The translations under genes were made by a program, and so were the position numbers. Under the pieces are notes generated by a model. The model was given only the letters and a program-made list of their open reading frames with translations, was not told where the DNA came from and did no database searches. From positions 228,724 through 292,723 of IMG/VR virus record IMGVR_UViG_3300032053_000002: 64,000 nucleotides of DNA. One strand, 5' to 3'. Positions 22,485-44,787 of the stretch are shown here, piece by piece. Every line of letters begins with the position of its first letter. The stretch's first letter is position 1.

Positions 22485-22784
22485 TTATACGGTAATACCA
22501 TAATTATTGCAGAAGATATATAATTTATTGGTTGCGTCATCAACAAGTTTGGAAACGACTTTGAATTCAGATTTGGCTTTCGCTCTACTTAGCTTGGGCA
22601 TTTTCTTTCCAGTAAACCGAGGTTCTTCGTCAAAATCTATTTCTTCCTCCAAATCAATGTCCTTTAATGCGTCCATAGTGTTTTCCAGACGATAATAGAG
22701 TTCTCCAAGAGAATCCGCATATCCTTCCTTTAACAATTTTTGTTTTTCTTCTTTAATTATTTTCACCAATTCGGATTTTTTCAT
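22485..22784 (-). CDS. Hypothetical protein with MKKSEL leader
   Basis: MKKSELVKIIKEE. Confidence 0.75.
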   Translation of the reverse strand: MKKSELVKIIKEEKQKLLKEGYADSLGELYYRLENTMDALKDIDLEEEIDFDEEPRFTGKKMPKLSRAKAKSEFKVVSKLVDDATNKLYIFCNNYGITV

Positions 22785-22796
22785 TTTAATTTCCCC

Positions 22797-23411
22797 TTAA
22801 ATATATCCCATTACCATCAACCACGACGGCGAACCGTAAGGATCGACACCATCCGGTTCAACCGTTTTTCCCACCACACTTTTCGATCTACCACTATTAA
22901 CCATTCTTTCAAGCGCTGAAAGTGATGGTGGTTTGCTTACACCGCGAACATATTTATACAAATTCTGAGTTAAGACGGCAATTTTGTTTTCATTGCCACC
23001 GCTAATTTTATAAATATACGTAACTCTATAATCTTTTGGCGTCCACTCTAGCACAACGTCTTCGCCAGATTTTATTTCAAACCCCTTTTTGCTCTTAACA
23101 TCTTTTAACGTAGTTGTCGTGAATGTTAAATGATGAGACACTCCTTCGTTCTTTGACTCTTCTATTCGCGTAAGAAGTTCTACAGGAACAGATGGGATGC
23201 CCATGACTAACGATACAGGATTTCCAGAGTAAACATCCGCAGTTACTCCATTAACAGTTTTCACTATCAGCACGCCTCTTCCGCGTTGAATCTCAGATTT
23301 AACTATTCTCAGCCAGTGTTTACCGACAACAGGTCCCATTTCTTTTGCGACTTTATTTAACTTCACATTATCAATTTTTACTTTGTCGCCAGGTTTAATT
23401 TTTTGTTGCAT
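22797..23411 (-). CDS. Hypothetical two-module protein
   Basis: 204 aa; modules separated at SKNE. Confidence 0.7.
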   Translation of the reverse strand: MQQKIKPGDKVKIDNVKLNKVAKEMGPVVGKHWLRIVKSEIQRGRGVLIVKTVNGVTADVYSGNPVSLVMGIPSVPVELLTRIEESKNEGVSHHLTFTTTTLKDVKSKKGFEIKSGEDVVLEWTPKDYRVTYIYKISGGNENKIAVLTQNLYKYVRGVSKPPSLSALERMVNSGRSKSVVGKTVEPDGVDPYGSPSWLMVMGYI

Positions 23412-23641
23412 TAGTTACTCTCCCGTTTAATTTTATTTTTATAAAAAGGATATTTTGCAGAGATTAAATCTTTTACGTTTGCAAGATCTTTTTTATCTAC
23501 AAACAAATACCCGTTTTCAAAATAGAAATTCTTTTTATCTATTCCATTTTCTTCCAAGTAACTCGTTACTTCTCTTTCCAGACCTTCTTTCAGCAGAGTA
23601 AATTCTTCTTTAATTATTTTATGGAGCTCGGATCTTTTCAT
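23411..23641 (-). CDS. Hypothetical protein with MKRSEL leader
   Basis: MKRSELHKIIKEE; AAGGAG RBS. Confidence 0.75.
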   Translation of the reverse strand: MKRSELHKIIKEEFTLLKEGLEREVTSYLEENGIDKKNFYFENGYLFVDKKDLANVKDLISAKYPFYKNKIKRESN

Positions 23642-23653
23642 TTAATTTTCTCC

Positions 23654-24304
23654 TTACATTTCGTCATCTTTTCGCCAGTATTTCGCGAGTTCTTTTTCGG
23701 CTTTTGGAGCGGCGCTATTTATATCATCTTTCAGATTTTGCATCACATCTTTCAGATATTGTTGTTTAGCAAAAGCGATTGCGCCTTTAACATCTCTCTT
23801 TTCGTAAAACTTTCGCTCGTTCATACCGATAGCGATTAAACCATCAACAATTTTTGGCTCTGGAAAATTCAGGAATTCTTCTTTGGAAAGTTCTTTCAAC
23901 AGTTGTTCTTTGATAAGACTTCGCAATTCGGATTTTTTCATTTTATTTCTCTCCTCAGCAATAATTCCGGCGTATCCATAAGATGTTCGTTTCCCTTTAG
24001 GCGCGATGGAGTGTCCATCAAACCACCATTTATCGGGATTATTTACAATGGCATCAACTTTTCCGAAATACTTTTTTTTATCAATGACGCCGTATCCCTT
24101 GATATAATAAAGTTTATTATCGGAATCCATCATAAACTTCCCGCTTCTCTGAACATCTATTTTAATATAGCTTTTTCCGGGTTTGACTTTAACCTGCCAG
24201 TCCGGCTCGAAAATTTGCCATTTATCTGGCGAAAAGTTCATATAGTATTCTTTTACTCGCTTCTCTAGAATTTCAGCGAATTTTTTCGCAAGTTGAACGT
24301 CCAT
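23654..24304 (-). CDS. Hypothetical protein with internal MKKSEL leader at 23941
   Basis: 216 aa; internal GAGGAG-preceded in-frame ATG. Confidence 0.7.
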   Translation of the reverse strand: MDVQLAKKFAEILEKRVKEYYMNFSPDKWQIFEPDWQVKVKPGKSYIKIDVQRSGKFMMDSDNKLYYIKGYGVIDKKKYFGKVDAIVNNPDKWWFDGHSIAPKGKRTSYGYAGIIAEERNKMKKSELRSLIKEQLLKELSKEEFLNFPEPKIVDGLIAIGMNERKFYEKRDVKGAIAFAKQQYLKDVMQNLKDDINSAAPKAEKELAKYWRKDDEM

Positions 24305-24305
24305 A

Positions 24306-24680
24306 TTACATACTCTGTTTCTTTTTGGTGCTGAATTGCGAGAACTTATTTTTATCCAAGTCCAACATATCAGTTAATCTTTTGAAAAGATATTCCAGTT
24401 TGTTTCTTGGAAAATTATATTTCGCCAATTCTTTTGACAATCTACCGAGTAAAAGTTCTACGTTCCCCGGAAGAGTAACTTCGGTTTCATTTACTTCTGT
24501 TTTTATCGGATTGCCTTCTTCATCAAGAACTTTTTTTCCATCTTTATCAAATTGACCTGGAAGCCCTTTGAAAGTAAAATTATCTTTTCTTTTCGGGGTT
24601 AATCCGAAAACACCGCCAACAGGTAGAAGCGAAGTAAGTAATACTATTCCTTCATTCAATTTTTTCTTATTCTTTTTCAT
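24306..24680 (-). CDS. Hypothetical protein
   Basis: Start at MKKNKKKLNEG after AGGAG. Confidence 0.65.
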   Translation of the reverse strand: MKKNKKKLNEGIVLLTSLLPVGGVFGLTPKRKDNFTFKGLPGQFDKDGKKVLDEEGNPIKTEVNETEVTLPGNVELLLGRLSKELAKYNFPRNKLEYLFKRLTDMLDLDKNKFSQFSTKKKQSM

Positions 24681-24696
24681 TTTGGTTTCTCCTATA

Positions 24697-25017
24697 TTAT
24701 TTATGAGTTGTTTTTCCAATAGTTACATCGAGAGATACATGCGCATCATCTGACCCCACCGCGGCCGCGTCTATCATAACGGTATACCCGCTATCAAAAA
24801 TGAATTCAACCACTTCACTGTCCCAAGTAGTATACGTGATTATTTTTTTAATTTTAGCGCCGCTGATTCTTGTTATCATGGCTTTATTTATCTTACCCAA
24901 CTTATCTCTGAGAACAATACCGGTATCATCCTCTTCAGCTTCATTTAATGCATCGGCTCTAAAATTCAGCCACTTTCTCCAGTCATATCCTTTTTTTTCT
25001 TCTACTTTTTTATTCAC
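24697..25017 (-). CDS. Hypothetical protein
   Basis: 106 aa, translationally coupled. Confidence 0.65.
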   Translation of the reverse strand: MNKKVEEKKGYDWRKWLNFRADALNEAEEDDTGIVLRDKLGKINKAMITRISGAKIKKIITYTTWDSEVVEFIFDSGYTVMIDAAAVGSDDAHVSLDVTIGKTTHK

Positions 25018-25505: not shown

Positions 25506-25506
25506 T

Positions 25507-26079: not shown

Positions 26080-26292
26080 TTACCAACTTTTTAGCCCTGC
26101 GTCCTTAGCGGCCGCTTGCAACTCTTTAACAAAATCTTGGAATTTTTTATGAACTTCTTTATAATCTTTTCCAGAAATATTTAATTTTAAGAGTTCCATC
26201 TCCATGTCTTCAATTATACCAGACAAATATCCACCAGTGCTCTCTTTTAGCAATTCTTCTTCAATTATTTTTCTCAACTCTGATTTTTTCAT
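26080..26292 (-). CDS. Hypothetical protein with MKKSEL leader
   Basis: MKKSELRKIIEEE. Confidence 0.75.
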   Translation of the reverse strand: MKKSELRKIIEEELLKESTGGYLSGIIEDMEMELLKLNISGKDYKEVHKKFQDFVKELQAAAKDAGLKSW

Positions 26293-26533: not shown

Positions 26534-26770
26534 TTATTTCTCCCACTCTTTAAAATTATTTCTCATTGAAATAATCAATGCTTCCAAATGTTCAAGATCC
26601 TGCTCAAATGATAGCATGTCAAGCGATTTTAATGCTTGCTCACTCCATTTCATATATTGACCCATTAAATTTAATTGACTTTTAAGTCTTAGTGCTATAG
26701 TGTTCGGCGACCATTCCAGTAATTTCTCTCTTTCTTCGCGAATAATTTTTTTCAGTTCCGATTTTTTCAT
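26534..26770 (-). CDS. Hypothetical protein with MKKSEL leader
   Basis: MKKSELKKIIREE. Confidence 0.75.
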   Translation of the reverse strand: MKKSELKKIIREEREKLLEWSPNTIALRLKSQLNLMGQYMKWSEQALKSLDMLSFEQDLEHLEALIISMRNNFKEWEK

Positions 26771-27312
26771 CGTTGTGCTCCTTGCGAATAATCGTTTTCA
26801 ATTATATCCTCAGCAACTTCTACGGCATCTTTTTCATTTATTAACGGGTCTTCTGACAACACCGACCAATGATACCCATCAACTTTTCCAACTACTTGCC
26901 ATGTATCATAAAACACTTCTCGTCCAAAATCACGAATAGACGCGGCTTTAATTTTCTTTTTCGCCGCATCATCAAACTCCTTTTCTACAGTAATAGTAAA
27001 TTTTGATGCATCGTGTCGCCATTTATTTTTACCAGTTTTTTTCCATCCATTAGGTAAATTACCTTCATTCAGGTTAAGCAACCGTAAAATTTCTTCCTTT
27101 ATAATTTGTCGCAATTCGGATTTTTTCATTTTGTGCTCCTTTTTAGTTTCATTCTTTTTTATCCGAAAAGTAACCACCTTTCTTCCGTTAATAGTAGGCA
27201 TTCCGTGTTCGTCTTTACCTATACTTTTTATTTCCGTTGATTTGTTCTTAAATTTTCCGGTAAGTATTATGTCGCCTATTTCTACAGGTATTGTTATCAT
27301 ATTATTCCCCAT
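26767..27312 (-). CDS. Hypothetical protein with internal MKKSEL leader at 27129
   Basis: 181 aa; internal AAGGAG-preceded in-frame ATG. Confidence 0.7.
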   Translation of the reverse strand: MGNNMITIPVEIGDIILTGKFKNKSTEIKSIGKDEHGMPTINGRKVVTFRIKKNETKKEHKMKKSELRQIIKEEILRLLNLNEGNLPNGWKKTGKNKWRHDASKFTITVEKEFDDAAKKKIKAASIRDFGREVFYDTWQVVGKVDGYHWSVLSEDPLINEKDAVEVAEDIIENDYSQGAQR

Positions 27313-27326: not shown

Positions 27327-27638
27327 TCAATTATATCTTGCATCTTCTCTATTATATTCGGATTTTTCTTCTTTTGCTAATTGTTTAATGTAATTTTTAA
27401 CTTCCGCCGGAAGATTTTTATTGACCCAACTAATAACTCCAGTTTCAGTTTGTACATGAGCCAGTTTTTCGTAATTGCCGTGTACTTCTCTATTTCTATT
27501 CCATATTGTCAATCCATTTCCCATACGCCCCGATCCAATATCATATTTTCCAATAATCTTTCCTTCTACTAGTTGTTTTTTTAATAGATCATATTCTTCT
27601 CTTATTATTCGTCGGATCGTTGACACTTTAATTTTCAT
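27327..27638 (-). CDS. Hypothetical protein with leader variant
   Basis: MKIKVSTIRRIIREE after GGAG RBS. Confidence 0.7.
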   Translation of the reverse strand: MKIKVSTIRRIIREEYDLLKKQLVEGKIIGKYDIGSGRMGNGLTIWNRNREVHGNYEKLAHVQTETGVISWVNKNLPAEVKNYIKQLAKEEKSEYNREDARYN

Positions 27639-27639: not shown

Positions 27640-28257
27640 TTACTTCTCCATATCAACTAAAATTTCAGTAATAATTTCCTGTATTTTATCATATTTGTCG
27701 CTTTTTTTGGAAGACCTTTTATTTACCGACTCATGCAACGATTTCATAAACGCACCCTGTGTACTCGGATTGCTCACAGTATCAAATGCGATTAGCTCAA
27801 AGTCGTCCTGAACCTGATTTGCACCATCGGTGGATTCTTTTACAGAACCGAGACCACGAGAAGAAATCCCGATCCGTATTCCAGATTTTAATAATTCTTT
27901 CAGAATATTTCCAGACGGAGTCCCCAATATTTCCAGCGTGCCTATCAGATCATCGTTAGTCCAGTGCATCTCCACGATATTATGACTAACGTTTGATAAG
28001 TTGACTACACTACTGTCCGGGTGGTCTAATTCACCGAGAGCGCGTTTTTGATCGACGAATTCTTGCAAATATCGTTTAACTTCTCGGGATAATATTTCTT
28101 TTGGATATATTCTTCCGTTCTGATTTTTTGAGTTTGCGCGTTGTAGCACTCCGGTGATTAAAATTCGCCCGTTGTTTTTTTCGAGCGACTCGTTAATCAT
28201 TGAAGGCGACACATCAAACGGAACATAATCCACTAATAATTGTCTATTGTCACTCAT
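27640..28257 (-). CDS. Prohead maturation protease (T4 gp21-like)
   Basis: NQNGRIYPKEIL...ALGELDHP...VSHNI...GISSRGLGSV...FDTVSNPST. Confidence 0.94.
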   Translation of the reverse strand: MSDNRQLLVDYVPFDVSPSMINESLEKNNGRILITGVLQRANSKNQNGRIYPKEILSREVKRYLQEFVDQKRALGELDHPDSSVVNLSNVSHNIVEMHWTNDDLIGTLEILGTPSGNILKELLKSGIRIGISSRGLGSVKESTDGANQVQDDFELIAFDTVSNPSTQGAFMKSLHESVNKRSSKKSDKYDKIQEIITEILVDMEK

Positions 28258-28830
28258 TTATTTTCTCCACTGGTTATATTTACTTTTCCAATCTTTTGGA
28301 GCATATTTTCTCCAAACATCTTGCACTTCTTTTTTTCTTCCAGATTTTTCTATTTTTGAAATCAAATCCATAATGTCGCTCTTTATTGCACTACCGGATG
28401 ACCACGACCGATAATCATCACTGTATTCGTATGTCCAATCAAAGTTTTTAAGCAAACTCTTTAGTTGCTCCAAATCATCAACAAGTTTTCCGGATAAGTG
28501 TTTTTCCATCTGATAAGTATGACCCGAATCAAATTTTTGCCCATCCACTTCAAACATCCACCAACTTCTCCAAACATCTTTTTTAATCGCTTTAATTTTC
28601 GTCCCGTCTATCAGAATAATTTCAAACTCGGCCGGAAATTCTTTTGTCTTTTTGGTTGACTTCACCCATTTTTTTAGTCGCGAGTTTCGGTCATCTTTTT
28701 TATCTGTATCTTCTGGAAGGCACCAATATAATTTAATTTCCATATCTTCTTTTACATCGTAGCCGTAATCTTTGTCAGTTACTTCCCTTAAAATTTTCTT
28801 GTTTATTAAAGTTTTTAATTTCATATTCAT
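28258..28830 (-). CDS. Hypothetical protein
   Basis: 190 aa, coupled to protease gene. Confidence 0.7.
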   Translation of the reverse strand: MNMKLKTLINKKILREVTDKDYGYDVKEDMEIKLYWCLPEDTDKKDDRNSRLKKWVKSTKKTKEFPAEFEIILIDGTKIKAIKKDVWRSWWMFEVDGQKFDSGHTYQMEKHLSGKLVDDLEQLKSLLKNFDWTYEYSDDYRSWSSGSAIKSDIMDLISKIEKSGRKKEVQDVWRKYAPKDWKSKYNQWRK

Positions 28831-29276
28831 TACTCCAAATCATTATATGATGCCTTGGAAGCTTTATAAATATCATCGAATAACTCCAATTCGTTTTTGT
28901 CTAACACACTGGTTAAAATCGTCTTCAATTCTTTTATGGTTGCGGTTCTTTCCTTGCCTTCTTTTTGTTTACTAAGAGTGAGAACCAACTCTTTGAATTT
29001 GTTATTCTTTTTCAATTTTTCTACAGCACTTTTAACAGTTTCCCGATTTTTCTTCGCTAACGCTCTAACTTTCATATTACCAAATTTGTCTTTCAACGTG
29101 TCAAGTCCCATAAGAGCACCGAGTCCAAGCACTTTAAGAAGGCCCAATCCAGCAATTGACCCAACTACACCTAATACGATATTAAGCGCCAATCCCAAAT
29201 CTTCATTTATTTTTTGTTTATACAAATAAGAGTCGATCTCTTCTTTTATAATCCGTTTTAATTCTGATTTTTTCAT
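28830..29276 (-). CDS. MKKSEL-leader protein with hydrophobic segment
   Basis: MKKSELKRIIKEE...INE then LGLALNIVLGVVGSIAGLGLLKVLGLGALMGL. Confidence 0.75.
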   Translation of the reverse strand: MKKSELKRIIKEEIDSYLYKQKINEDLGLALNIVLGVVGSIAGLGLLKVLGLGALMGLDTLKDKFGNMKVRALAKKNRETVKSAVEKLKKNNKFKELVLTLSKQKEGKERTATIKELKTILTSVLDKNELELFDDIYKASKASYNDLE

Positions 29277-29299: not shown

Positions 29300-29674
29300 T
29301 TAAACCCAGACCGTGCGTTTTTTATAAAGGTCAAATAGAACCGCCGCTATTTCCGCTCTAATCAGACTCTTTATCTCTTCATAATCCGCACTATCTAATA
29401 CCTCGTTTAGTTTTTCGCCTTTTTTTGTATTCGTATTTTCATATACTACTAAAGTATTTTTGTTAAGTTCTGCGGCGACATCTTGACCATCATACCAGGT
29501 AAATCCACTAACTTCTTTTTCTTCTTTTCCATATTTTACTTTTAGTTTTTCTAAATATTTTTCAGCTTCCGCTTTATCTTTTACACGAACCATAATTTTT
29601 CCTTTTAATGGAAATCCCTTGAATTCTTTTAAGATTTCATTTTTAATTATTTTCGCAAGTTCCAATTTTTTCAT
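29300..29674 (-). CDS. Hypothetical protein with leader variant
   Basis: MKKLELAKIIKNEILKE after GGAG RBS. Confidence 0.7.
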   Translation of the reverse strand: MKKLELAKIIKNEILKEFKGFPLKGKIMVRVKDKAEAEKYLEKLKVKYGKEEKEVSGFTWYDGQDVAAELNKNTLVVYENTNTKKGEKLNEVLDSADYEEIKSLIRAEIAAVLFDLYKKRTVWV

Positions 29675-29704: not shown

Positions 29705-30055
29705 TTATTTTTTTACCTTTATCCTCGTAAATTCGGAACAATTTCCCCAAAATTTTTCAATTAGTCGATCTATTTGCACCGATAATTTACGTATCTCTTT
29801 ATAATCCGCTACCAATTTATCATAGTCATCGCGATTTAATATTCTCTTTATTCTAGTCAAGTTGCTTGCAAAATATTCAGTTCCTGTTTCAAGTGAAATT
29901 GATTTTTCATTTAGTATTTTCACGCTTTGCATAAATCCTTTCACAACAAATTTAATATTTTTTATATGATCTCCAACTCCGTGTAAAAAAAAGTTATCGG
30001 CGGCATTAACTTCAATTTCTTCCCTAATTATTTTTTTTAATTCTGATTTTTTCAT
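29705..30055 (-). CDS. Hypothetical protein with MKKSEL leader
   Basis: MKKSELKKIIREE. Confidence 0.75.
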   Translation of the reverse strand: MKKSELKKIIREEIEVNAADNFFLHGVGDHIKNIKFVVKGFMQSVKILNEKSISLETGTEYFASNLTRIKRILNRDDYDKLVADYKEIRKLSVQIDRLIEKFWGNCSEFTRIKVKK

Positions 30056-30337: not shown

Positions 30338-31138
30338 CTAATAAAATTTTTTAATCTTTGTAATTATTCGCCCCATTTTTTCTTCTATTCGCTGTAATGC
30401 GCGATGACTTTGTTTCCAGTAATCTCCGGAATCCAATTCTGATTCTGTTTTCAATCGTAAGTTTATATCAATCATATCGTCTATTTCGCATAGATTGTCG
30501 CGGATCATTCGTAAAGAATAACCAAGTTTTTGTTTTGGAGTCAGAGTAGAATCTTCTTTGAATTCTCTGTAGCGACCCTCAGCAATTTTATTTTCGTTTT
30601 TTGATGCATCCTTATACATTTGAATTGTATATAATCCAACACTCCCGGTTTTCCAACCCTGTTTTTGTAATTTTTCGGCTTCCTTAAATCCTTTTTCAGA
30701 ACGCAGGTCAATTGTTTTATATTGTATGGCTTCATTTATAGATTCAGCAACATGCGCGGAAGCTAAACTATAAACAAACGATTCTAATTCGTGCGGGGAA
30801 ACTTTAAGTTTTTCGGCAAGCGCGTGAACCTTCTCATCAGGGATTTCTTTACCATTGTATTGTTTCAGAAGAGACATTACTTCATCTTTCGCCTCTTTAC
30901 TAACCACTTCATTCATTTTATCCGGTTTATCAACGTCACCGATCACTTCCCAATCAGTCGCCGTATCTTTGGCCTTTTTCTTGCCCCATTTTTTCGCCTT
31001 TTCAGGATCCATCGGGCCGGTAAATGCGTATGGCGTGTTATATCCAGCAACATCTCCGGTTTGCGTAACTTCTTTTAACAATTCATCTATAAGTTCGCGA
31101 ATGATGTCGCGAAGTTTTTGTTCAGTGAGTTTTGCCAT
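30338..31138 (-). CDS. Hypothetical multi-module head-cluster protein
   Basis: MAKLTEQKLRDIIRELIDELLKE...GYNTPYAF; modules punctuated by xNE. Confidence 0.75.
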   Translation of the reverse strand: MAKLTEQKLRDIIRELIDELLKEVTQTGDVAGYNTPYAFTGPMDPEKAKKWGKKKAKDTATDWEVIGDVDKPDKMNEVVSKEAKDEVMSLLKQYNGKEIPDEKVHALAEKLKVSPHELESFVYSLASAHVAESINEAIQYKTIDLRSEKGFKEAEKLQKQGWKTGSVGLYTIQMYKDASKNENKIAEGRYREFKEDSTLTPKQKLGYSLRMIRDNLCEIDDMIDINLRLKTESELDSGDYWKQSHRALQRIEEKMGRIITKIKKFY

Positions 31139-35100: not shown

Positions 35101-36125
35101 TCAATAATTTTTAATTTGGAATCGTATTTCCAATTTTCGCTTTCTTCCACTATCAACTTAGGATATGACTTTTCTATATTCGCAACTGGAAACATCAAAT
35201 GGTCGTTTACTGTAAGTTCAGAAACCAGTTTATATTTACCGTCTTCAGTCATTATTGGATGACTTTCAGTAGCATATAAAGTTTGATGAGCAGTTTTAAT
35301 TTTGTATATTTCCTTTCTTCCAGAATAAATAGTTTTTATAACACGAGATTTCAACAATTTTTCATCGTTATAATCAAACGAAAAAACTTCGTCGTTTTCT
35401 TCCACGTCTTTTATATTTTTAATTCCAGAAGAAGTCCAGACTTTACTGTCCCATCTTAAACATTTACCATACGGAAGAAAGTTACTATCACTATTCAGTC
35501 TAAAATGCGCAACCTGAAATTTTTCAAATTCCGCTTTTCCGGTCATTCCTTGTAAAACAAACTTCACCTCGTCGGGCTTTTTCGGGTCTATTCCTTCCAA
35601 CCGTGTCACTTCATAAACCGGAAGAGGCATTACTCCAGTTACACCATATTCTTTCGCCAAGTCCAAGTATAAAAAATAATCGCCATATTTGCACATTCCC
35701 CGAACCCACGTCGGTAAATTAAATTCTATATTCATTATATCGTAAAAAAGATTTTCTAACACTTCTCGAACACTTTTTGTTCCCGATTTTATTCTCAAAA
35801 TATATCCCATTTCATTTTTTAATGTGCTCTCTTCTGAGAAAACATCGAGTGCAGCAGATATAATTGCGTCCATATCCATAACTTCATAATCTCTAAACAG
35901 TTGCAATCTTGCAGCAGTAACTCCGTAGGGAGTTCCCTGGGCGAAAGTTCCATAACTTAGCGTAGAATACAAACGAGTGTATTTATCATTCATTCGTCTG
36001 TCGCCGATTTTCTGCACCGAGTCTATATCAACTACGCGCAGACGGCGACCACCGATGTTACGAACTACTACATCACTGGAAAAAAATCTTTTTAATCTAT
36101 TAAAAATGTTGTCATTAGTTGCCAT
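32103..36125 (-). CDS. Portal protein (T4 gp20-like) with two inteins
   Basis: FRDYEVMDMDAIISAALD, EDAMLIHRIMRAPEKRVFKIDVGNL, EDFYLPVRGG, DVRFSRTVERLQ; 637 aa after splicing. Confidence 0.95.
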   Translation of the reverse strand: MATNDNIFNRLKRFFSSDVVVRNIGGRRLRVVDIDSVQKIGDRRMNDKYTRLYSTLSYGTFAQGTPYGVTAARLQLFRDYEVMDMDAIISAALDVFSEESTLKNEMGYILRIKSGTKSVREVLENLFYDIMNIEFNLPTWVRGMCKYGDYFLYLDLAKEYGVTGVMPLPVYEVTRLEGIDPKKPDEVKFVLQGMTGKAEFEKFQVAHFRLNSDSNFLPYGKCLRWDSKVWTSSGIKNIKDVEENDEVFSFDYNDEKLLKSRVIKTIYSGRKEIYKIKTAHQTLYATESHPIMTEDGKYKLVSELTVNDHLMFPVANIEKSYPKLIVEESENWKYDSKLKIIDENILKDNFNDFVRFFGFMIGDGWLDKSNKTVCFSIGDRLDKSKKYLDFIEKLGINYRLTNELKSDSSCVVNSVYFYKLFEQLGFITGSFNKEVPEWIWRLDANTKKEFLYGFADADGCDISEGLWQIGTVNYKLMQDSRALAVQAGFSVTRTWGAKSENKGMCLFTFREKSRDYKKISENYAVEKVQSIEYIGKDDVYDIQIDNSLHNFVAEGFVVHNSIIEGARRVWKQLILMEDAMLIHRIMRAPEKRVFKIDVGNLAPNEVDAYMEVIMNKVKKIPYIDESTGEYNLKFNMQNITEDFYLPVRGGDSGTSIESLAGLEYNAIDDIAYLKDKLMAALKVPKAFLGYEEALNCIVPETKIPLLNGKTKTVAELIKDYENGITNYAYSINQKTNSIVPGKITWAGFTRKNAELVRVKLDNEKYIDCTSDHKFLTRDGRWVEAKDLLVGQSLMPLYLNETDRGYSTVYQPNNEKYKEVHRVVAEHYGLVKKGSGCVVHHKDFTKENNYPENFDCSMDYWGHRRYHQNLKKGQKSGKYINCESCGKSFYTYPYRDRNAKYCSYECYHNDMKTGENRKCVCCGKEFWAELGRNRKYCSFECSCKDYGNDRIDNIKYTKVQYENLLDAAKNSKSFKELRHRLGLTDIKTLYKLFDRFGINKETFICENMLLAMNNKRFIHKYVLNHKVVSVEFLTERKNTCDITIEEYSNFATDAGVIVHNSKATLASQDVRFSRTVERLQKVIISELTKIALVHLFIQGFKGSDLVDFELELTIPSIIYEQEKVELWNSKISLARDAKDTKMRSTYWIYKNIFNMTEDEIAEEKEQVVEDAKLAFRLSQIETEGNDPAKTDQTFGGEETDEAGRNEKFNLNYDKTESSGSADKKKEEYEPVNPSDDGRRGKKLRTRDKDEPFGDDPLGQRDYEKILKLDTQLNYDANKNKHLSRRLKHAEAVLGRRLITTSKPDILKEFEGDFEIKLKDFFSESKTKPKENKEVNNNENDE
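32949..34040 (-). mobile_element. Intein 2 in portal (HNH endonuclease + Cys-rich repeats), 364 aa
   Basis: N-terminus CIVPETKIPLLNG, block B DCTSDHKF, C-terminus GVIVHN followed by Ser; core VHRVVAEH...VVHHKDFTKENN. Confidence 0.92.
34446..35462 (-). mobile_element. Intein 1 in portal (LAGLIDADG endonuclease), 339 aa
   Basis: N-terminus CLRWDSKV, block B ATESHPI, FFGFMIGDG and FLYGFADADG, C-terminus FVVHN followed by Ser. Confidence 0.93.
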
Positions 36126-36144: not shown

Positions 36145-36573
36145 TTATCCTTCGTCCATCGCGTCTATAAACTTATGAATATCTCTTGTCGTCTTTGGAA
36201 GTTTAGTTCCTGTAATGTCTTCAAATGCATCCTTCATAAAAGGCTGATTATAACGCAGGTGGCTTTTTAACCACCCCTTATTATTTGTTTCTATGTTTCT
36301 CGCCAACTGGCGATACATTGTCTCAACCGCATCTTTATTATTTTTTCTTACAAAATCTTCAACATCTTTTTCGGTATATTTAAGAGCATTTTTATCGCCA
36401 CGTTTTTGCGCTACGTTCAATTCTTTTTTCTTTAGCGCAAGTAAGTCATTCAGTTTCCAATAATCAATTTCATCTAGTTTATCATATAATTTATCAAACG
36501 ATTCTTTTAATTTTGATTCTCTAATTTTTTGTATCTCTTCTCTTATAATCCGTCTAAATTCTGATTTTTTCAT
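36145..36573 (-). CDS. Hypothetical protein with MKKSEF leader
   Basis: MKKSEFRRIIREEIQKIRESKLKES. Confidence 0.75.
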   Translation of the reverse strand: MKKSEFRRIIREEIQKIRESKLKESFDKLYDKLDEIDYWKLNDLLALKKKELNVAQKRGDKNALKYTEKDVEDFVRKNNKDAVETMYRQLARNIETNNKGWLKSHLRYNQPFMKDAFEDITGTKLPKTTRDIHKFIDAMDEG

Positions 36574-36823: not shown

Positions 36824-37189
36824 TTATTTTTCTCGCATAACTTCTTTTACTAACTCGCGAATAATGTCGCGAAGTTTCAATTCTTTTATCTTCATTTCAT
36901 CTCTTCTTTTACTGTCGCGAATAATCTGCGCATATTTGCTCCAATCGGGTGGAAGCACAGGTGTTCCATCATTCGGTAAATCTCTGAGAACCTTTACATT
37001 ATCTATCGTAAACCGTAGCAATTGCCCACCCGGCATTTTGCCGATTATACCTCTGTTCGTATTAAATGATCTCGCAAGTTTATTTTTTTCATCTGCCGGT
37101 ATAGGCATTTTTTCTATTCTAAAGTCTATTAGGCCAATACCCTTCGCATTATAAACGGCGTGCGGAGTCTCCAGTATTTGTTTATTCAT
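36824..37189 (-). CDS. Hypothetical protein with C-terminal KLRDIIRELVKE motif
   Basis: 121 aa. Confidence 0.65.
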   Translation of the reverse strand: MNKQILETPHAVYNAKGIGLIDFRIEKMPIPADEKNKLARSFNTNRGIIGKMPGGQLLRFTIDNVKVLRDLPNDGTPVLPPDWSKYAQIIRDSKRRDEMKIKELKLRDIIRELVKEVMREK

Positions 37190-37389: not shown

Positions 37390-38988
37390 TTATAAATATT
37401 CTTTCAAATCTATTCTAGTTTTTCCCACGCCATAGTCAAATGGGTTTACCCGCAAATCCGTGGATTTATAGACGCCGTCATAAGAAACTTTTCCTATCCT
37501 GCCTAAAACAATTTTTGTCAGCTCAATTCCCTGGGTTTTTAACTTTAACGCTGTGTCGCGAACCCATAATAATATACCCAACGACATAACCAGATCATCA
37601 TTTCTTCCCGTCATGGCTTCAGCTCGCCCATCTTTCCAAATAAATGTTTCTAATTCGTTTATAGTTCGTATTGAACGAACAATTATTTCTCTATCTAAAA
37701 AATATCTTTCTACTTTTGAAATAAGCAACGGACGAGTTCTCATCGTGGTCGCGAAACCAGGTTTCATTTTTTTCTCTTCCCGATGTATTTTATTTTTAAT
37801 TTGGTGAGTCGTATCAACATATTTTAGATCTTCCGTAGAATAGAAAACGTTCGGATAATTCAGATTAATAATTTCCTGCAATGTTCCCCAACCGAGATTT
37901 TCTCTTTCCACAACTATCATCGCGTTATTATATGTTATCCCGAGACTGGCGAGTAATCTTCCAAATGCGCGAGTGTCTATTTTCCCCCGATATTCCGCTA
38001 CTTGTATTACATTTTCCACATCAAAAACTTGCGCGGCGGAAAAATCAGACCCGTCTCCGCGAGCAACGTCCGCCGATATTACATATGCTTTAGTATAATC
38101 TGGATAATCCCAGATCCATAATCCGTTATCAATTCCGCTTTTTTCTTTCGGTTCGGCTACGTGAGTCGCCTTATAGAACTGAAGTATTCCCATATCCACG
38201 ACAGTATTTCCAGATGTTAAGAAATCTGCGTCGCACTCTTGCGCGGCCTTTCGTTTTCCGAGTTTAAGGTCTTGCTCATCTCTCCACATCTGATCTCGTT
38301 CTGGATGCACGTACCACGGCAACTTCATCGTCGCAAACCCGTTTATCCCGTCTTCAGCGTCTGTCCACATTTTATGAAACCAGTTACCGATACCATTCGG
38401 TGTTGAAAGAACGATACAATCTCCACCTGTCGCCAACGTTTGTTGAGCGGCGACCCATATTTCGTCAATGTATTCTATGAATGCGGCTTCGTCTAAAATT
38501 AGCAGAGACAAGGCTTCAGAACGACCGGCGGTCGGAGAAGAAGAAATTGCTTTAACAATTGAACCGTTACTTAACGCTAAAGACATTTTGTTGTTTTCAG
38601 TTTCAACCGTTTTTAACCATCCGGGCAAGTTATCATACATAACTCGTATTTTTGTAATCATATTTTTGGCGACATCTCGTACTGTTGCAATAACTAAAAT
38701 GTTTTGATCCGACTTGAAAAGGATTCTCCACAATGCGTATCCGGCCGTTAAAGTGGATAACCCCAACTGGCGAGATTTCAGAATTAAATTATAACGATTC
38801 TTTTTAATTTCTTCTAGAGTTTTTTCCTGAAACGGGAATAAAATGAACGGTATTTTCCCAGCACTTACGGGATGTTGTATTTTCGCATATTTTTTTAAGA
38901 AATAGGCGGTATCCACAGAACATCGTTTGTATTCTTCGGCAACAATATCTTTTAGTGACTTTGCTACTATGGGTAATGTTTCATTCAT
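37390..38988 (-). CDS. Terminase large subunit (T4 gp17-like)
   Basis: Walker A LKSRQLGLST, Walker B LLILDEAAF, STPNG, nuclease ADVARGDGSDFS and DDLVMS. Confidence 0.95.
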   Translation of the reverse strand: MNETLPIVAKSLKDIVAEEYKRCSVDTAYFLKKYAKIQHPVSAGKIPFILFPFQEKTLEEIKKNRYNLILKSRQLGLSTLTAGYALWRILFKSDQNILVIATVRDVAKNMITKIRVMYDNLPGWLKTVETENNKMSLALSNGSIVKAISSSPTAGRSEALSLLILDEAAFIEYIDEIWVAAQQTLATGGDCIVLSTPNGIGNWFHKMWTDAEDGINGFATMKLPWYVHPERDQMWRDEQDLKLGKRKAAQECDADFLTSGNTVVDMGILQFYKATHVAEPKEKSGIDNGLWIWDYPDYTKAYVISADVARGDGSDFSAAQVFDVENVIQVAEYRGKIDTRAFGRLLASLGITYNNAMIVVERENLGWGTLQEIINLNYPNVFYSTEDLKYVDTTHQIKNKIHREEKKMKPGFATTMRTRPLLISKVERYFLDREIIVRSIRTINELETFIWKDGRAEAMTGRNDDLVMSLGILLWVRDTALKLKTQGIELTKIVLGRIGKVSYDGVYKSTDLRVNPFDYGVGKTRIDLKEYL

Positions 38989-39722: not shown

Positions 39723-41300
39723 TTATATCGCTTTATTGGTTTCGGCGCTTCCTATCTGAGTCACTCTTTTTTTCGCACGTTTACGGCTAAGCCCTCCAGG
39801 AATTTCGTTAAACATAACGAATTTTAGCTCTTCCCGAACCAACTGACGAACTTTCTGAACTTCTTTGCTTTCTTTCGCAACGATTTGATCGCGTTTTTTT
39901 GCTTTCAATCTTTTTGTCGGGTTATATTCTGGCTCACCCGCTGCCTGAGAAACTGGCTCAAGAGTTTCTTTTTTAATTTTTTCATCTTTGCATTCAGATT
40001 TGCCTTTCCAATTTTTTTCCACGTATGAAAAGAATTCATCTTTTTTGTCGCCTAAGTCGGCTGGCGATTTTGCACCGAACTTCTCAAGTGCGTCTTTGAA
40101 GAATTGCTGATATTCATTGGTTTCTTCTGCCAAGACTTCTTTGATAAGCCCTTTTAATTCTGACATTTTGATCTTCATCGTATTTTCTCCTAGTTGATTA
40201 TTTTCGTTCTTTTTATTTTTTATTGCGTGTCCTTCAAATCCATACGCAATTTTCCAAGCATCGTCTCTGTCAATTTGCGGATTTGCTTTCATTATCGCTC
40301 TTGCCATTGAAGTAGCATCGGGATATACGACAGCTAAAGCGGATTTAATTGCGTTTTCAAATTTCTTTTCCTGAGCTGCGGAAACTTCCTTTATCATCGT
40401 ATTCTCTCCTTGTTGTATATTTTCTTTTATCATCACAGTATTATTGCCACTAAATTGCAAATCTAATACTGTTTTATGTCCTTGTTGTTGCATATATTTT
40501 GCAAATTTTTGAGCGTCGGTTTTGTCGCTAAAACGGAATTCCAATCCTTCTTTTCCTTTACTAACCGGTTTCCCAACAGATACCAATTTCATTTTTTTAG
40601 CAACTGGTAAACCGTCGTCAAGTGCCTTTTTGAATTTTTTTGGAATAGGACTCGTTATGCGAAATTTAGGTTTTTGTTTAGCACCGGTTACGTCACCCGC
40701 TTTCGTTTTTTGTCCCGAAACAGTTACTACGGTATTGGGTCTAACCTCGTGTTTTTCAGAGTATTTTGTAAATTCATCTTTATCCGCAAATTCTAATTCT
40801 TTCAATGAATTTTCTTTTATTGCCACATAATCTTTAGTCCGTAATTTATCTTCCAAATTTATCGGGGATATTCTTGCAGATTTTATTTGTTTATCATCTG
40901 GAATAATCATATAATTAAAATTTTTATCGTCATATTTTATTGTCGCAGTCAACCACCCCTTTCCAGAACCTTTGTAGAATTTTTCAAACTTTATTCTAAA
41001 CGGTTTCAAATGCGCAGAAAGTTTATTTAATCGCGACAAATTATATTTTCCGCCTTCATTCATTTTATTTTCTCCTAATCGTTTTATATTCGCCGGTATT
41101 TTACCGCCTTTTTTCGCCATGTCTTTTTTCAGATCGTCATAGGCGTCAGCGTCAATACCGTGTTCAGTCTCGTTCCATTCTTTCGCTTTGGCGACCAACC
41201 CATCTAAAGTTAAATCACCATTTTCTACATCTACCAAGCCTTCCATATCAGCCTTTCGTTTCGCGTTTTTATTCTTAAAATAATTTATTGGATAGCTCAT
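39723..41300 (-). CDS. Multi-module (polyprotein-like) hypothetical protein
   Basis: 525 aa with three internal RBS + ATG junctions (41063, 40397, 40178). Confidence 0.75.
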   Translation of the reverse strand: MSYPINYFKNKNAKRKADMEGLVDVENGDLTLDGLVAKAKEWNETEHGIDADAYDDLKKDMAKKGGKIPANIKRLGENKMNEGGKYNLSRLNKLSAHLKPFRIKFEKFYKGSGKGWLTATIKYDDKNFNYMIIPDDKQIKSARISPINLEDKLRTKDYVAIKENSLKELEFADKDEFTKYSEKHEVRPNTVVTVSGQKTKAGDVTGAKQKPKFRITSPIPKKFKKALDDGLPVAKKMKLVSVGKPVSKGKEGLEFRFSDKTDAQKFAKYMQQQGHKTVLDLQFSGNNTVMIKENIQQGENTMIKEVSAAQEKKFENAIKSALAVVYPDATSMARAIMKANPQIDRDDAWKIAYGFEGHAIKNKKNENNQLGENTMKIKMSELKGLIKEVLAEETNEYQQFFKDALEKFGAKSPADLGDKKDEFFSYVEKNWKGKSECKDEKIKKETLEPVSQAAGEPEYNPTKRLKAKKRDQIVAKESKEVQKVRQLVREELKFVMFNEIPGGLSRKRAKKRVTQIGSAETNKAI

Positions 41301-41833
41301 CTTACCAACTCATTTTTTTTACAAAAATCAATAATCAGTTTTATATCTTTATCAGAAAAATCTTTTCCGTAGATATTTCTTGCGTAGCCTTTCGTAAGAT
41401 ATTTTTCAAAGTCACCATCAAAGCGACCCTTTGCCGATTCTATTGCGAGCGCAATAAAATGTCTTTCGTCTTCATTCGCCATGTCGCCATCGCTCAACAT
41501 TAAACTTTTTAATCTAGGAAAAGTTGTTGAATAATACTGACCTTGCGTTTTGAAACTTATATTTGGTTTCGGTTTCTCTTCTTCGCCTTTTCCTTCAGGA
41601 GATTGCGGCTCTTTCGGTAAAGACATTCCGCCACCGCCGCCACCACTGGCCTGTTTTACATTGGATTGTCTTTTATCAAAGTTTAATTTTTCTTTGTTAA
41701 AATCTGTTTTTTCTTTATCCACATCAATTTTTTGTTTTTGTAACTTATTTTTTTCTTTTTCCGATTTATCTACGGAAGAAGTTTGTTCTTTTAAAATATT
41801 CCGTATCAATTTCTTTAATTCATTTATTTTCAT
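41297..41833 (-). CDS. Hypothetical protein with leader variant
   Basis: MKINELKKLIRNILKE; start at 41833 preferred. Confidence 0.7.
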   Translation of the reverse strand: MKINELKKLIRNILKEQTSSVDKSEKEKNKLQKQKIDVDKEKTDFNKEKLNFDKRQSNVKQASGGGGGGMSLPKEPQSPEGKGEEEKPKPNISFKTQGQYYSTTFPRLKSLMLSDGDMANEDERHFIALAIESAKGRFDGDFEKYLTKGYARNIYGKDFSDKDIKLIIDFCKKNELVR

Positions 41834-41853
41834 CGTTTTTCTCACCATATATG

Positions 41854-41861
41854 TATAAATA
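41854..41861 (-). promoter_or_regulatory. Candidate late-promoter octamer TATTTATA
   Basis: 20 nt upstream of 41833. Confidence 0.55.
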
Positions 41862-41879
41862 TGATATTTTAATAAAACA

Positions 41880-42125
41880 TCACAATCCTAAAACAATTTT
41901 GATTACGAACGCCAAAAGAACTCCGCCGGCACCTGCCAATAGGCCCCACAACCCGGATTTTATTTGTAAAGAAGTTATATCATTATCCAGTGCACTTATC
42001 TTGTTCAGCAACTCGATCACGTTTTTTCGCAAGTTTTCGTTCTCCGTTTTGAGTTCCCGTACACTTTCAATGATATAAATTTTATATTTATCCCAATCAG
42101 TTCCGTTACTAAGTTCATTACCCAT
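41880..42125 (-). CDS. Coiled-coil + C-terminal TM protein (holin/XhlA-like candidate)
   Basis: C-terminal GLWGLLAGAGGVLLAFVIKIVLGL. Confidence 0.55.
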   Translation of the reverse strand: MGNELSNGTDWDKYKIYIIESVRELKTENENLRKNVIELLNKISALDNDITSLQIKSGLWGLLAGAGGVLLAFVIKIVLGL

Positions 42126-42465
42126 TATCTTCGTCTTCTTCTGATCCGAGTATTTTCAGTTTTCCAGGGTTGTTCGGATCGGGAATAACATCACCATCCG
42201 ATTTATTACACAACGAATCAACCGTATATCCGGCCGTAAATACACCAACCACACTCAACCCACCCGTCGCGATCAATGATGCGTATAAAACTATTGCGGA
42301 AATACAGGTAACAAGCGTATTCTTAAAATGACTACTAAAATACTGTTTAATATCTGCGAATGTTTCGCCCAATATTTTTTTCTTTAGAAAGTGACTAAGA
42401 ACTCCCAGCCACAATACAATAAAGTATAAAAAATAAATTAAAATTTGCATCCAATCGATATTCAT
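42118..42465 (-). CDS. Multi-TM membrane protein (holin-like candidate)
   Basis: Two to three TM segments and an acidic C-terminal tail. Confidence 0.55.
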   Translation of the reverse strand: MNIDWMQILIYFLYFIVLWLGVLSHFLKKKILGETFADIKQYFSSHFKNTLVTCISAIVLYASLIATGGLSVVGVFTAGYTVDSLCNKSDGDVIPDPNNPGKLKILGSEEDEDNG

Positions 42466-43037
42466 GACTTTTCTCCCAATTCTTGTTTTTCTTCTTTTTC
42501 TATTTTTTCAAGTTCAGAGTCAACAAATTTTAGCTCATTTTCCCAGAACTCTTTTATTTTTTCGTCGACCGTCCACTTTTCAAATTCGCCTTTTTCATTT
42601 ACAAACTCAATATATCCTTTTTTCATTTCTTCAAGATAATTCCCGATCTCCGCTTTCGCTTCCGAATAAAACCCCCTTTGTTTGCTTCTAATATATTGTT
42701 TTTCATATTGCTGAAAAGTTCCTTCGGTTATCATTTTCGCGTCTCGTTCAATTAAGCAACTTAAGCAAAATCCGAACTTCCAGTAAACATGCATATCTTT
42801 TGATGCTTTACCGAGAACATTTTTGCATTTAGGGCAAAACAATGGAATATTCGCATCTATTTTCGGAACTTTTACTTTATAACCGTTTTTTTGTTCCCAT
42901 TCCCCATTCTCGTCTTCCCACACATCACCTATTTGATGCAACGTTCTTATATTTGGATTGATATACCCAACTTGGACTTTGGGATTTTCTCCGCGCAAAA
43001 CCGAGCGGATTCGTTTAGGATAAATATATTTGCTCAT
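42462..43037 (-). CDS. Zinc-binding hypothetical protein
   Basis: CPKC...CLSC. Confidence 0.7.
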   Translation of the reverse strand: MSKYIYPKRIRSVLRGENPKVQVGYINPNIRTLHQIGDVWEDENGEWEQKNGYKVKVPKIDANIPLFCPKCKNVLGKASKDMHVYWKFGFCLSCLIERDAKMITEGTFQQYEKQYIRSKQRGFYSEAKAEIGNYLEEMKKGYIEFVNEKGEFEKWTVDEKIKEFWENELKFVDSELEKIEKEEKQELGEKS

Positions 43038-43815
43038 TTTTAACTCCTATAAATTTCTTTTTGGTCATTGATAATTTATATTTTTCATTTCTTTCTTTTT
43101 GTCTTTTATCGGCTTCATTTTTACCATACTTATTTAACCAAATAGAGTATATTGATCTACCATACATAGGATTCTTTTTGCCTCTATTTAAACCTGGATG
43201 CTTTTTACCATAATTAGGATTATCATTATTTGCTCCATATTTTTTATGCCATTCACTCATTTTCTTTTTAGTTTCTTCTGGGTGATGTTTTCCGAAAAAT
43301 GGATTGTTTTCTCCAGACATTCGTATTGATAATTCCGGAAATTTCTTCCCAAAATTAGGATGATTCTTACCTATTCTTTTTTTATTTATTTCTGATAGAT
43401 CAGGTCTTTTCTTACCGTACATGGGATGATTTTTTCCAGTTCTACCATACATACCATTTTTTTTACCACGGCAACTCATCGCGGGCCACGCGCCATTATT
43501 TGCCCAATCATTCCTCTTATAAATTTTTTTATTTACTTTGACTTCATATTTTCGCGCTTCGTCTATTGTATCAAAAGTCCAACGCAATTTCCACTCAAAA
43601 TTATTAGGATTTTTCTTAAATTCCTCTTGAAATGTGCCACTTGTAAAATAATTTTTAGAAAAATCATCCGCCGGACAGATTTTAGAAAAAACGTTAGCAT
43701 ATCTCAATCCATGATATTTTAACCCATCAGATTTCCGTTTAATAAAATATGTATATGGTTTTATTTTAGTAAAATGTTTTGTCTTCAATTTGTTCGCTCT
43801 TTTTTTATAATGCAT
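43015..43815 (-). mobile_element. GIY-YIG-like homing endonuclease with NUMOD3 repeats
   Basis: YTYFIKRKSDGLKYHGLR...YFTS...ARKYE...N; repeated GKNHPMYGK/GENNPFFGKHH. Confidence 0.75.
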
Positions 43816-43842
43816 TTCATTTTTCTAGCCATAATAACTCCT

Positions 43843-44787
43843 TTATGATAATACTACGGTGATGTCGTATCTGTCTAGTGGATCTTCTACACTTCCCGCT
43901 CCAGCGGCGTGTAAACTTCCGTATATTTTTTTAATCTTGCCTTGTTTATCGTGGAACTCAATTTCAAAATTCCAAATTTTACCGGTGGGAGTATTCCAAC
44001 CGATAGAGCCATCTTTCGCATGTGTGTATGTGGCTTTTGTTGTATTCCACTGCAAATTCATTTTTTCAAATTCTTTCCAGATTTTATTTACGCCTTCCCA
44101 GCTATCATCTTTGAAAATCCCCTTTGTAAGCGGGGTTATTTTTTTATAGATGTATCGTTTCGCAGTCTCTTTATCTTTTCCATCTATTTCAGATTCAGTT
44201 TGTTCTCTGAGAACTTTTTTAATTTCTTCGCGAATGATTTCCCTAAGTTTTAAATTTTTCATTGTAGTGTTTTCCTTTACTTTTTTTATTTTTTTCGCCT
44301 TGTTTTTTACTATTTCGTATGGAACTAATTTCTTTCCAGTTGGGATTTTTAATCCTTTCATCCCACCGATAAAATCTATATTTCCGCCCGGAATAGTCAT
44401 TCTTTCCCTATGGTTCATTTCAACATAATCTTCGCTACCGTCTTTATATTTTACTCTGTAAAGAACCTTGGGCGACACTTCTTCTTTTAGTATACCGCGA
44501 TTCCTGAACCATTGTTTATAAAATTGCGGAATAAATCCTTCAAATTTTACATCATACTCTTTTAAGAGCGTCCAATACGCTTCCATTTGCATACTCGGTC
44601 GCTCGTTATTTTGCGATGTGCTCGGCACCAACTTATACCAATTATCTTTTTTCTCAACAACTAAATGATGCGCAAACATACTATCAAATTTAACTCCCAT
44701 TTCATCTATTTTATATTTTTTAGTAATTTCATTAAAAAATTCTTCGTTTACCCACAGTTGATAATTTTCAAACTTTGCGACATACAT
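43843..44787 (-). CDS. Multi-module hypothetical protein with internal leader at 44262
   Basis: Internal MKNLKLREIIREEIKKVLRE. Confidence 0.72.
   Translation of the reverse strand: MYVAKFENYQLWVNEEFFNEITKKYKIDEMGVKFDSMFAHHLVVEKKDNWYKLVPSTSQNNERPSMQMEAYWTLLKEYDVKFEGFIPQFYKQWFRNRGILKEEVSPKVLYRVKYKDGSEDYVEMNHRERMTIPGGNIDFIGGMKGLKIPTGKKLVPYEIVKNKAKKIKKVKENTTMKNLKLREIIREEIKKVLREQTESEIDGKDKETAKRYIYKKITPLTKGIFKDDSWEGVNKIWKEFEKMNLQWNTTKATYTHAKDGSIGWNTPTGKIWNFEIEFHDKQGKIKKIYGSLHAAGAGSVEDPLDRYDITVVLS

Follow-up and report, generated by a model that had tools for sequence, protein, structure and literature searches.

The window analysed here is a 64-kb stretch (positions 228,724–292,723) of the 293-kb viral contig IMGVR_UViG_3300032053_000002, and all leader counts given for the source phage refer to that stretch. 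It carries the head genes of a T4-like phage and, tightly packed between these late structural genes and co-oriented with them, a series of small genes whose products share an N-terminal peptide, here called the leader, with the 20-residue consensus MKKSEL[KR]QII[KR]EEIxK[VL]L[NK]E. The minus strand carries every recognisable gene but one, a radical-SAM gene at ~11245–12345. The head module includes genes for a T4-type large terminase (37390–38988, identified by Pfam), a gp20-type portal with two inteins inside (32103–36125; Pfam Portal_T4, Intein_splicing, HNH_3 and PT-HINT), a gp21-type prohead protease that is the presumed processing enzyme (27640–28257; Pfam Peptidase_S77, PF03420, E 1.4e-30), an acidic gp22-like scaffold encoded between the protease and capsid protein genes (19562–20794, probable start 20743), and a gp23-type major capsid protein (17914–19545; Pfam Gp23, E 1.7e-75). 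The nearest published capsid proteins are those of an uncultured 484-kb phage (58%), Microcystis phage Mel-JY01 and Flavobacterium phage immuto (both 53%), and Rhodothermus phage RM378 (38%), and the phage is therefore placed among the far-T4 phages. The span from portal to capsid protein gene measures ~6 kb in the compact relative immuto, compared with 12.5 kb and ~30 genes in the window.

Leader sites in the window

The 14-nt pattern ATGAAAARATCNGA matches nine times in the window against 0.08 matches expected, always on the coding (minus) strand, and none of 100 shuffles attained nine matches. A leader hidden Markov model (HMM) trained exclusively on sequences of other contigs scores the nine canonical leaders at 21.6–37.2 bits, with a maximum of 6.7 bits for the reversed window translations that served as the null. 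An earlier reading of the letters alone (the sequence-only reading) had placed near-exact leaders at these nine positions, and both the pattern count and the HMM bear it out. All nine contain I-x-E at residues 10–12, and eight have a second (L/I)-x-E at residues 15–25.

Seven of the canonical leaders stand at gene starts. The genes at 22485–22784 (99 aa, with an acidic payload; leader at 22784, 23.7 bits) and 23411–23641 (76 aa, with the leader form MKRSEL; leader at 23641, 24.5 bits) carry a second motif, L-K-E, at residues 18–20 and 17–19, respectively. They are joined by genes at 26080–26292 (70 aa; leader at 26292, 27.6 bits), 26534–26770 (78 aa; leader at 26770, 21.6 bits), 28830–29276 (148 aa, with a hydrophobic Gly/Leu-rich payload segment; leader at 29276, 29.5 bits), and 29705–30055 (116 aa; leader at 30055, 26.0 bits), and by 36145–36573 (142 aa), which lies between terminase and portal and starts with MKKSEF at 36573 (31.3 bits). 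The other two leaders are internal to longer open reading frames (ORFs), as the sequence-only reading had stated, and each is preceded by its own GGAG ribosome-binding site ~7 nt upstream. The 216-aa ORF at 23654–24304 comprises an N-terminal domain, the leader (start 23941, residue 121, 21.7 bits), and a C-terminal payload, and the 181-aa ORF at 26767–27312 has its leader at residue 62 (start 27129, 37.2 bits, ribosome-binding site AGGAG). Because the internal sites at 23941, 27129 and 40178 retain a ribosome-binding site in frame, these ORFs look like in-frame fusions of neighbouring cassettes.

Single-sequence AlphaFold2 (AF2) models were obtained for two leader proteins, with low to moderate confidence (predicted local distance difference test [pLDDT] 63 and 69). 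In the low-confidence model of 23654–24304, a disordered linker (residues 106–121) is followed by a predicted leader helix (124–138), and in that of 36145–36573 the leader helix (pLDDT <50) is modelled as detached from a helical payload (pLDDT 70–90).

The variant leaders proposed from the letters fared unevenly. Three score above the null, namely those at 44262 (MKNLKLREIIREEIKKVLRE, 15.9 bits, internal to the 314-aa ORF 43843–44787), 27638 (MKIKVSTIRRIIREEY, 10.8 bits, at the start of gene 27327–27638, which overlaps the end of the protease gene), and 29674 (MKKLELAKIIKNEILKE, 12.7 and 8.8 bits in two profile scorings, gene 29300–29674). The sites at 41833 (2–4 bits) and ~40178 (6.3 bits, internal to the 525-aa ORF 39723–41300) are at noise level. 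Those at 31138 and 36895 are leaders, but they are copies of a distinct, related one (KLRDIIREL), the leader of a conserved head-module family discussed below. In the long ORF 39723–41300, two ribosome-binding sites are translated in frame ('GENTM'), as would be expected of fused cassettes. Translated sites of this kind ('GENTM', 'GLGDNIM') mark the long ORFs 39723–41300 and 10278–11129, in which neighbouring cassettes appear fused with no stop codons between them.

The remaining two proposed variants, at 10484 and 11129, escape the HMM, and one of them could be recognised by other means. They belong to a 283-aa two-module ORF (10278–11129) that starts with MIKLKKILE|SPD at 11129 and contains MKLKNLIKE at 10484. 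Its body is homologous (BLASTP E 2e-18) to a database protein, P0009, that has canonical leaders at two equivalent places, 10484 being the position of the second, internal one. In the alignment, I-L-E|SPD of the window protein coincides with I-N-E|SPD (...VINE|SPD) of P0009, so that an orthologous payload is preceded by a 20-aa leader in one phage and by a 9-aa leader in the window, both ending in I-x-E|SPD. Because of this homology and alignment, the element at 11129 is identified as a shortened leader.

A second shared N-terminal motif, MDKKxWxKLL(xK), was considered as another leader system and rejected, as it is nearly restricted to this contig: MDKKxWxKLLxK opens four otherwise unrelated small proteins (gene starts 25806, 26064, 36822 and 30327, minus strand), and a single further example, in L130, was found among the fetched loci.

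The leader and its payloads across relatives

From all fetched loci we collected 236 distinct leader ORFs, 229 of which start with Met, and the leader nearly always stands at the very beginning of its ORF. Median protein length is ~100 aa (range 20 to 467 aa), and one relative (L023) has ten leaders in 13.9 kb. Conservation reaches 2.3–5.2 bits at positions 1–14 and 0.7–1.1 bits at positions 15–20, where Leu18 and Glu20 stand out, and drops to background (≤0.21 bits each) from position 21 onward; positions 17–20 had not been used in finding these sequences. Motif counts on 220 leaders place an [LI]xE ending at residue 12 in 217 and a second one, ending at residues 16–20, in 76%, compared with 13% in the remaining ORFs of these loci and 3–6% deeper in the leader proteins themselves.

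The constraint resides in the peptide rather than in its DNA. Ser4, Leu6, and Ile9/10 are encoded by different synonymous codons in different leaders, and positions 7 and 11 switch between codons for Lys and Arg. Across relatives, the DNA preceding the start codon shows no conservation, a Shine-Dalgarno (SD)-like motif being present in only 26%. With unconserved upstream DNA and free variation among synonymous codons, it is the peptide that is under selection; for the same reasons, the suggestion in the sequence-only reading that the ribosome-binding site and leader DNA serve as a recombination handle found little support. Identical runs among the window leaders are at most 18–21 nt long.

The leader is essentially virus-specific. 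A degenerate 13-codon DNA pattern recovered at least 120 stretches in viral contigs but only 5 from 596 Gb of genomes of bacteria and archaea. The cellular matches come from Bacteroidales and Flavobacterium records, most of them from phage-like contigs in a single Bacteroidales metagenome-assembled genome; Flavobacterium is also the genus that the relatives infect. A tblastn search of the consensus against cultured and published phages (INPHARED) returned one weak match only. No Pfam or PHROG family is common to the leader-bearing proteins and no curated model covers the N-terminal motif, nor was a description of the leader found in a literature search that included a survey of far-T4 contigs.

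What follows the leader differs from gene to gene. After removal of the leader, 213 payloads fell into 177 BLASTP clusters (E 1e-3), 155 of them singletons, and each window payload is a singleton, in keeping with the earlier statement that the sequences behind the leaders are unrelated. Payload types include leucine-rich repeat (LRR), all-helical, mixed alpha/beta and a few membrane-like proteins, and their isoelectric points (pI) are bimodal, 57% lying above 8 and 32% below 6. The 16 leader proteins of the window have no convincing Pfam or PHROG family match; among the 80 longest leader proteins, Pfam identified LRR repeats in four, three domains of unknown function, and two weak single matches. 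A profile search of 1.84 billion cluster representatives returned 2,035 proteins at E ≤ 0.001, with the leader at residue 1 in ~130 of the best 150 matches. A minority of the database proteins have two or three leaders per ORF. Database proteins P0003–P0009 show the layout leader-payload-leader-payload, as in the fused ORFs of the window.

The expectation that payloads would vary across relatives was borne out in a set of 80 relatives collected with the protease as seed. Between 43 and 80 of them have homologues of the capsid protein, scaffold, protease, portal, and terminase genes and of three unnamed head-module genes, as opposed to none for the canonical cargo genes (26080–26292 was not among the queries). 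The 70-aa payload of 26080–26292 has one other copy, 96% identical, in 5.8 billion proteins, by a word-indexed search that is unable to follow a 20-aa leader.

In genome position, the leader genes are less uniform than the window had suggested. The proposed clustering around the protease gene holds in the window, and in several lineages a leader gene directly follows the protease gene; it is not general, since leader genes of relatives also lie between tail-tube and baseplate(-hub) genes. The gene immediately 3′ of the protease in 67 relatives is variable and only sometimes leader-bearing. At loci without structural homologues they adjoin genes for ribonucleotide reductase, primase, thymidylate synthase, DNA polymerase B, ligase, and chaperonin, and those beside replication genes are almost always co-oriented with them. 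The sequence-only reading held that a leader equally common in non-late genes would refute capsid targeting, and the replication-gene neighbours bear on this point. In the T4 record, alt adjoins the ligase gene and targeted proteins are encoded among early and middle genes; because T4 ip and alt genes are equally scattered, position neither refutes nor supports capsid targeting. A sigma-70 promoter scan of the window gave background levels. The T4 late-promoter consensus TATAAATA on the plus strand (TATTTATA in gene sense) occurs 30 times against 10 expected, mostly in short intergenic gaps directly upstream of minus-strand structural genes (for example at 20874, 41854, 48317, 51037, 55988 and 59335); because these copies are mostly antisense to the genes they are uninformative on expression timing, and TATAAATA may be a promoter-like motif of the clade.

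The processing machinery resembles that of T4. His79 and Ser132/133 of the protease are invariant in the alignment with T4 gp21, and these catalytic residues, together with the Pfam match, uphold the earlier description of a T4-like phage with a gp21-family protease. The T4 gp23 propeptide comprises 65 residues and ends at E65 (PMC5694885). In the window capsid protein, L-H-E63 aligns with the L-T-E65 maturation site of gp23, and cleavage at L-H-E63|V is predicted from this alignment. The corresponding context, QL[IV]xE followed by [AS][SN]xT[GS], is kept in 39 of 40 relatives' capsid proteins, suggesting that protease specificity is probably conserved between this phage and T4. The scaffold begins with MTKLLKESIAEAK, in which LKE...IAEA is near T4 gp22 MLKEQLIAEA, and it is the presumed docking partner of the leader. 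The (I/L)-x-E motifs that the sequence-only reading had noted in the leaders, capsid protein (LME/LIE), and scaffold (LKE) are all present, with IAE as an additional one in the scaffold. The C-terminus of the protease (27640–27700; also in L023 and L201) contains helix-like segments, KIQEIITEIL / SIINDIL, that loosely resemble the leader core and may be a shared docking element; this C-terminus obtained no score with the leader HMM.

A possible source of the leader lies in the same module. The p266 family, represented in the window by a gene at 30338–31138 (minus strand, start 31138) and in 57 of the 80 relatives, is encoded between portal and protease and conserved in its N-terminal ~45 aa only. 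The window protein begins with a leader-like helix, KLRDIIRELIDELLKE, followed by VTQTGDVAGYNTPYAF. Across the family, ...EL[EK]E closes the helix, and next comes (V/A)(S/N)xT(G/S), a copy of the capsid protein cleavage-site context. Profile–profile alignment (hhalign) of the leader with the p266 N-terminus gives a probability of 73% and an E-value of 3e-5, with leader Glu20 opposite the Glu that precedes the (V/A)(S/N)xT(G/S) site. Because of this alignment, and because the p266 homologue of one relative (L178) bears the exact MKKSEL leader, the p266 N-terminal propeptide is the probable ancestor of the cargo leader. Another copy of the p266-type leader, starting at 36895, forms the 3′ end of the 121-aa ORF 36824–37189.

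Several further observations concern this type of N-terminus. Within the p266-type leader, the RDIIRE-coding DNA can be folded into a perfect hairpin (TTCGCGA...TCGCGAA, 31094–31113) and is repeated at 36855–36872, at the 3′ end of ORF 36824–37189. A conserved 282-aa head-module family (21169–22017 in the window, and relatives) usually starts with MKLKxLLKE (L-K-E at residues 7–9), which is similar to the propeptide of T4 gp24 and to the variants proposed at 10484 and 11129. Many relatives (L055, L077, L052, L078, and L076) encode, downstream of the protease, a conserved 320–425-aa protein that has no homologue in the window; L(I/L)TEKF(A/Q)SK comes directly after the leader-like helix at its start.

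Weighing a proposed prohead-targeting role

The closest precedent is the capsid-targeting sequence (CTS) of T4. Mullaney and Black are said to have described it in 1996 on the internal proteins IPI, IPII, and IPIII and on Alt, with removal by gp21. T4 targeting sequences are 10–20-aa propeptides removed by gp21 after L/I-x-E (PMC9026906; PMC5694885), and residues 4 and 7 of IPIII are used for targeting, its residues 8 and 10 for processing (PMC9026906). The T-even internal proteins are unrelated and have only the targeting leader in common, so the paradigm that the sequence-only reading invoked, one leader on unrelated proteins, is documented (PMC3012670; PMC9026906; PMC12373910). All three of T4 Ip1–3 inhibit host restriction enzymes (GmrSD) (PMC12373910).

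Tyr4, Phe7, Ile8, and Glu10 of IPII and IPIII in the T4 record correspond, at an offset of two residues, to Leu6, Ile9, Ile10, and Glu12 of the window leader, with equal hydrophobic-x-x-hydrophobic-I-x-E spacing. Both systems combine a T4-type head (gp20 portal, gp22-like core, and gp23 shell) and a gp21-family protease with a short N-terminal leader (12–20 versus 10–20 aa) that starts with MK, ends in hydrophobic-I-x-E, and is common to unrelated small proteins whose genes vary between related phages. The present leader differs in its distinct and longer sequence (20 aa), with two candidate cut sites and no detectable homology to the CTS, and on these grounds it is an analogue or a very distant relative of the CTS rather than a member of its sequence family. 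The scale differs as well: nine canonical leaders and several variants are found in 64 kb here, compared with three ip genes and alt in T4 and at least 10 known from related phages, and the leader stands on more than 2,000 payload families. Many of the cargo genes here are interleaved with morphogenesis genes, and multi-leader ORFs occur in frame. The p266 family occupies the position of T4 gp67/gp68 between portal and protease and likewise has a helix ending in (L/I)-x-E, although no homology of p266 to these proteins was detected and its conservation is limited to the N-terminal region. T4 gp24, with a 10-aa propeptide, starts with MAKINELLRE|S, and the window p266 protein with MAKLTEQKL....

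Other cargo systems are more distant. Inner-body and ejection proteins of phiKZ, 201phi2-1, and SPN3US have long propeptides that a gp21-like protease cuts at S/A-x-E (PMC5694885; PMC10052503). They share with the present system the presence of multiple internal head proteins, removal after Glu, often at several sites, and an inferred prohead targeting, but their propeptides usually exceed 100 aa and are specific to paralogue families, unlike a single movable tag of 20 aa shared by unrelated payloads. Encapsulin cargo-loading peptides and phage P22 scaffold–tail fusions show that a short tag suffices to bring diverse cargo into an HK97-fold shell; these tags, however, are usually C-terminal, bind the shell protein directly, undergo no protease removal, and belong to nanocompartments of cells or to systems made by engineering. 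Polymorphic MuF-toxin fusions and the Dar proteins of phage P1 are also variable capsid-borne payloads delivered with DNA, although their targeting is achieved by a large conserved domain or by assembly partners instead of a cleavable 20-aa leader.

We consider it probable, with reservations, that the leader is a T4-CTS-like propeptide that directs hypervariable cargo to the prohead core, after which the protease removes it. In such a mechanism, the leader would be a short helix through which unrelated small proteins acquire an affinity for scaffold and core proteins, the components of the prohead core; the tagged proteins would be enclosed as the gp23-type shell assembles, and the gp21-type serine protease would cut after Glu12 and/or a Glu at residues 16–20 to leave a mature payload inside the head. 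The leader would have been copied from the N-terminal propeptide of the p266 family and then spread onto fast-turnover accessory genes, and in ORFs of two or three fused leader–payload units the internal leaders would act as docking and cutting sites. We infer docking, cleavage, and encapsidation and, more weakly and by analogy only, injection and a host-directed (for example anti-defence) function of the payloads. The fullest version of this model, in which thousands of payload families are loaded into proheads by one core-protein-derived 20-aa propeptide, polyproteins are cut in the capsid, and the products are injected as first-wave host effectors, is possible but doubtful.

A number of points weigh against prohead targeting. 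The tblastn search found no cultured phage with the leader. What the leader shares with the T4 targeting sequence is a pattern only, and the enrichment of [LI]xE is suggestive rather than conclusive because the motif arises easily in helices rich in Lys, Glu, Ile, and Leu. The leader at 30055 has no second (L/I)-x-E, and 7 of the 213 payloads, including that of 28830–29276, have a membrane-like segment, which is unusual for packaged internal proteins. The amphipathic character that the sequence-only reading had attributed to the leader did not hold up, the hydrophobic moment of the consensus (0.24) being ordinary and not above that of its shuffles. Finally, because many leader genes of relatives adjoin replication or nucleotide-metabolism genes, late expression of the whole set is not established.

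That last point also fits a docking or oligomerisation helix that is retained, uncleaved, and recruits accessory proteins to a common phage or host hub other than the capsid, such as polymerase, ribosome, chaperonin, or a membrane complex: the relatives' leader genes adjoin replication, nucleotide-metabolism, and chaperonin as well as structural genes. The abrupt end of conservation would be expected of such a helix too, and a modelled helix detached from its payload would suit any tag. We nevertheless regard this explanation as rather unlikely, as it leaves unexplained the (L/I)-x-E at two fixed positions, one of them at the boundary, the capsid-like maturation site after the related p266 helix, and the 9-aa stub ending in I-x-E on a homologous payload; T4 targeted proteins are, moreover, likewise encoded among early and middle genes.

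The remaining explanations locate the conservation elsewhere than in a portable peptide. If the ribosome-binding site and leader DNA were mainly a recombination handle for swapping, duplicating, or fusing cassettes and the peptide were incidental, one could account for the 18–21-nt identical runs, the tandem arrays of leader genes, the in-frame leader–payload fusions in the window and databases, and the complete turnover of cargo between relatives; the unconserved upstream DNA, with an SD-like motif in 26%, and the free synonymous codons over fixed amino acids make this quite improbable, and such a handle can at most be a side effect of peptide function. It is highly improbable that the leader proteins are one fast-diverging paralogous family of which the N-terminus alone remains recognisable. 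Some clusters are indeed small paralogue groups within a contig, such as five LRR proteins in L182, but payloads of 20 to 467 aa with bimodal pI, diverse folds, and 155 singletons among 213 do not resemble a single family, and conservation falls to zero within one residue after position 20 instead of decaying gradually. An RNA-level element in the 5′ coding sequence, for instance a translational operator or enhancer of a regulon, could draw on the A-rich codons 2–3 (AAA AAA), which are typical of efficient initiation regions, and on the precedent of T4 RegA-type repressors, which bind near start codons. It is scarcely credible here, given that conservation over 60 nt tracks amino-acid and not nucleotide identity and that internal in-frame copies retain the whole peptide.

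What sets the system apart is its scale, a distinct leader that apparently originated in a core-protein propeptide, and the presence of multi-leader fused ORFs. If the leader is T4-CTS-like, a sequence search would identify proteins carried in the head and codelivered with DNA by uncultured marine and freshwater phages, a class previously found only via virion proteomics of cultured phages. The more than 2,000 payload families would then form a pool of candidate counter-defence and host-takeover proteins, and engineers of T4-type capsids would gain in the leader a second, independent tag for loading cargo; were the full cargo model true, a leader search in metagenomes would directly list the effectors that phages inject. 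The findings also suggest an evolutionary route by which a core-protein propeptide is copied onto accessory genes. Should the leader prove unrelated to the capsid, it would still mark an unrecognised tag on thousands of viral dark-matter proteins.

Other features of the window

One of the two portal inteins contains an HNH endonuclease, and a 98.6% identical contig (L193) lacks ~1.0 kb at window positions 34443–35462, indicating an intein presence/absence polymorphism. The head module also includes a gene for a bS21-like ribosomal protein (20929–21156), located between the conserved 282-aa gene and the scaffold and kept in L023 (11111–11317). The radical-SAM gene at 11245–12345, the sole clear gene on the plus strand, is flanked by minus-strand structural genes; its product, identified by eye, is lysine 2,3-aminomutase-like (KamA/EpmB-like) and has a CxxxCxxC motif. 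Tail-fibre-like ORFs at 45478–47229 and 63367–63980 contain long collagen-like GTSGTAGTGGSS repeats.

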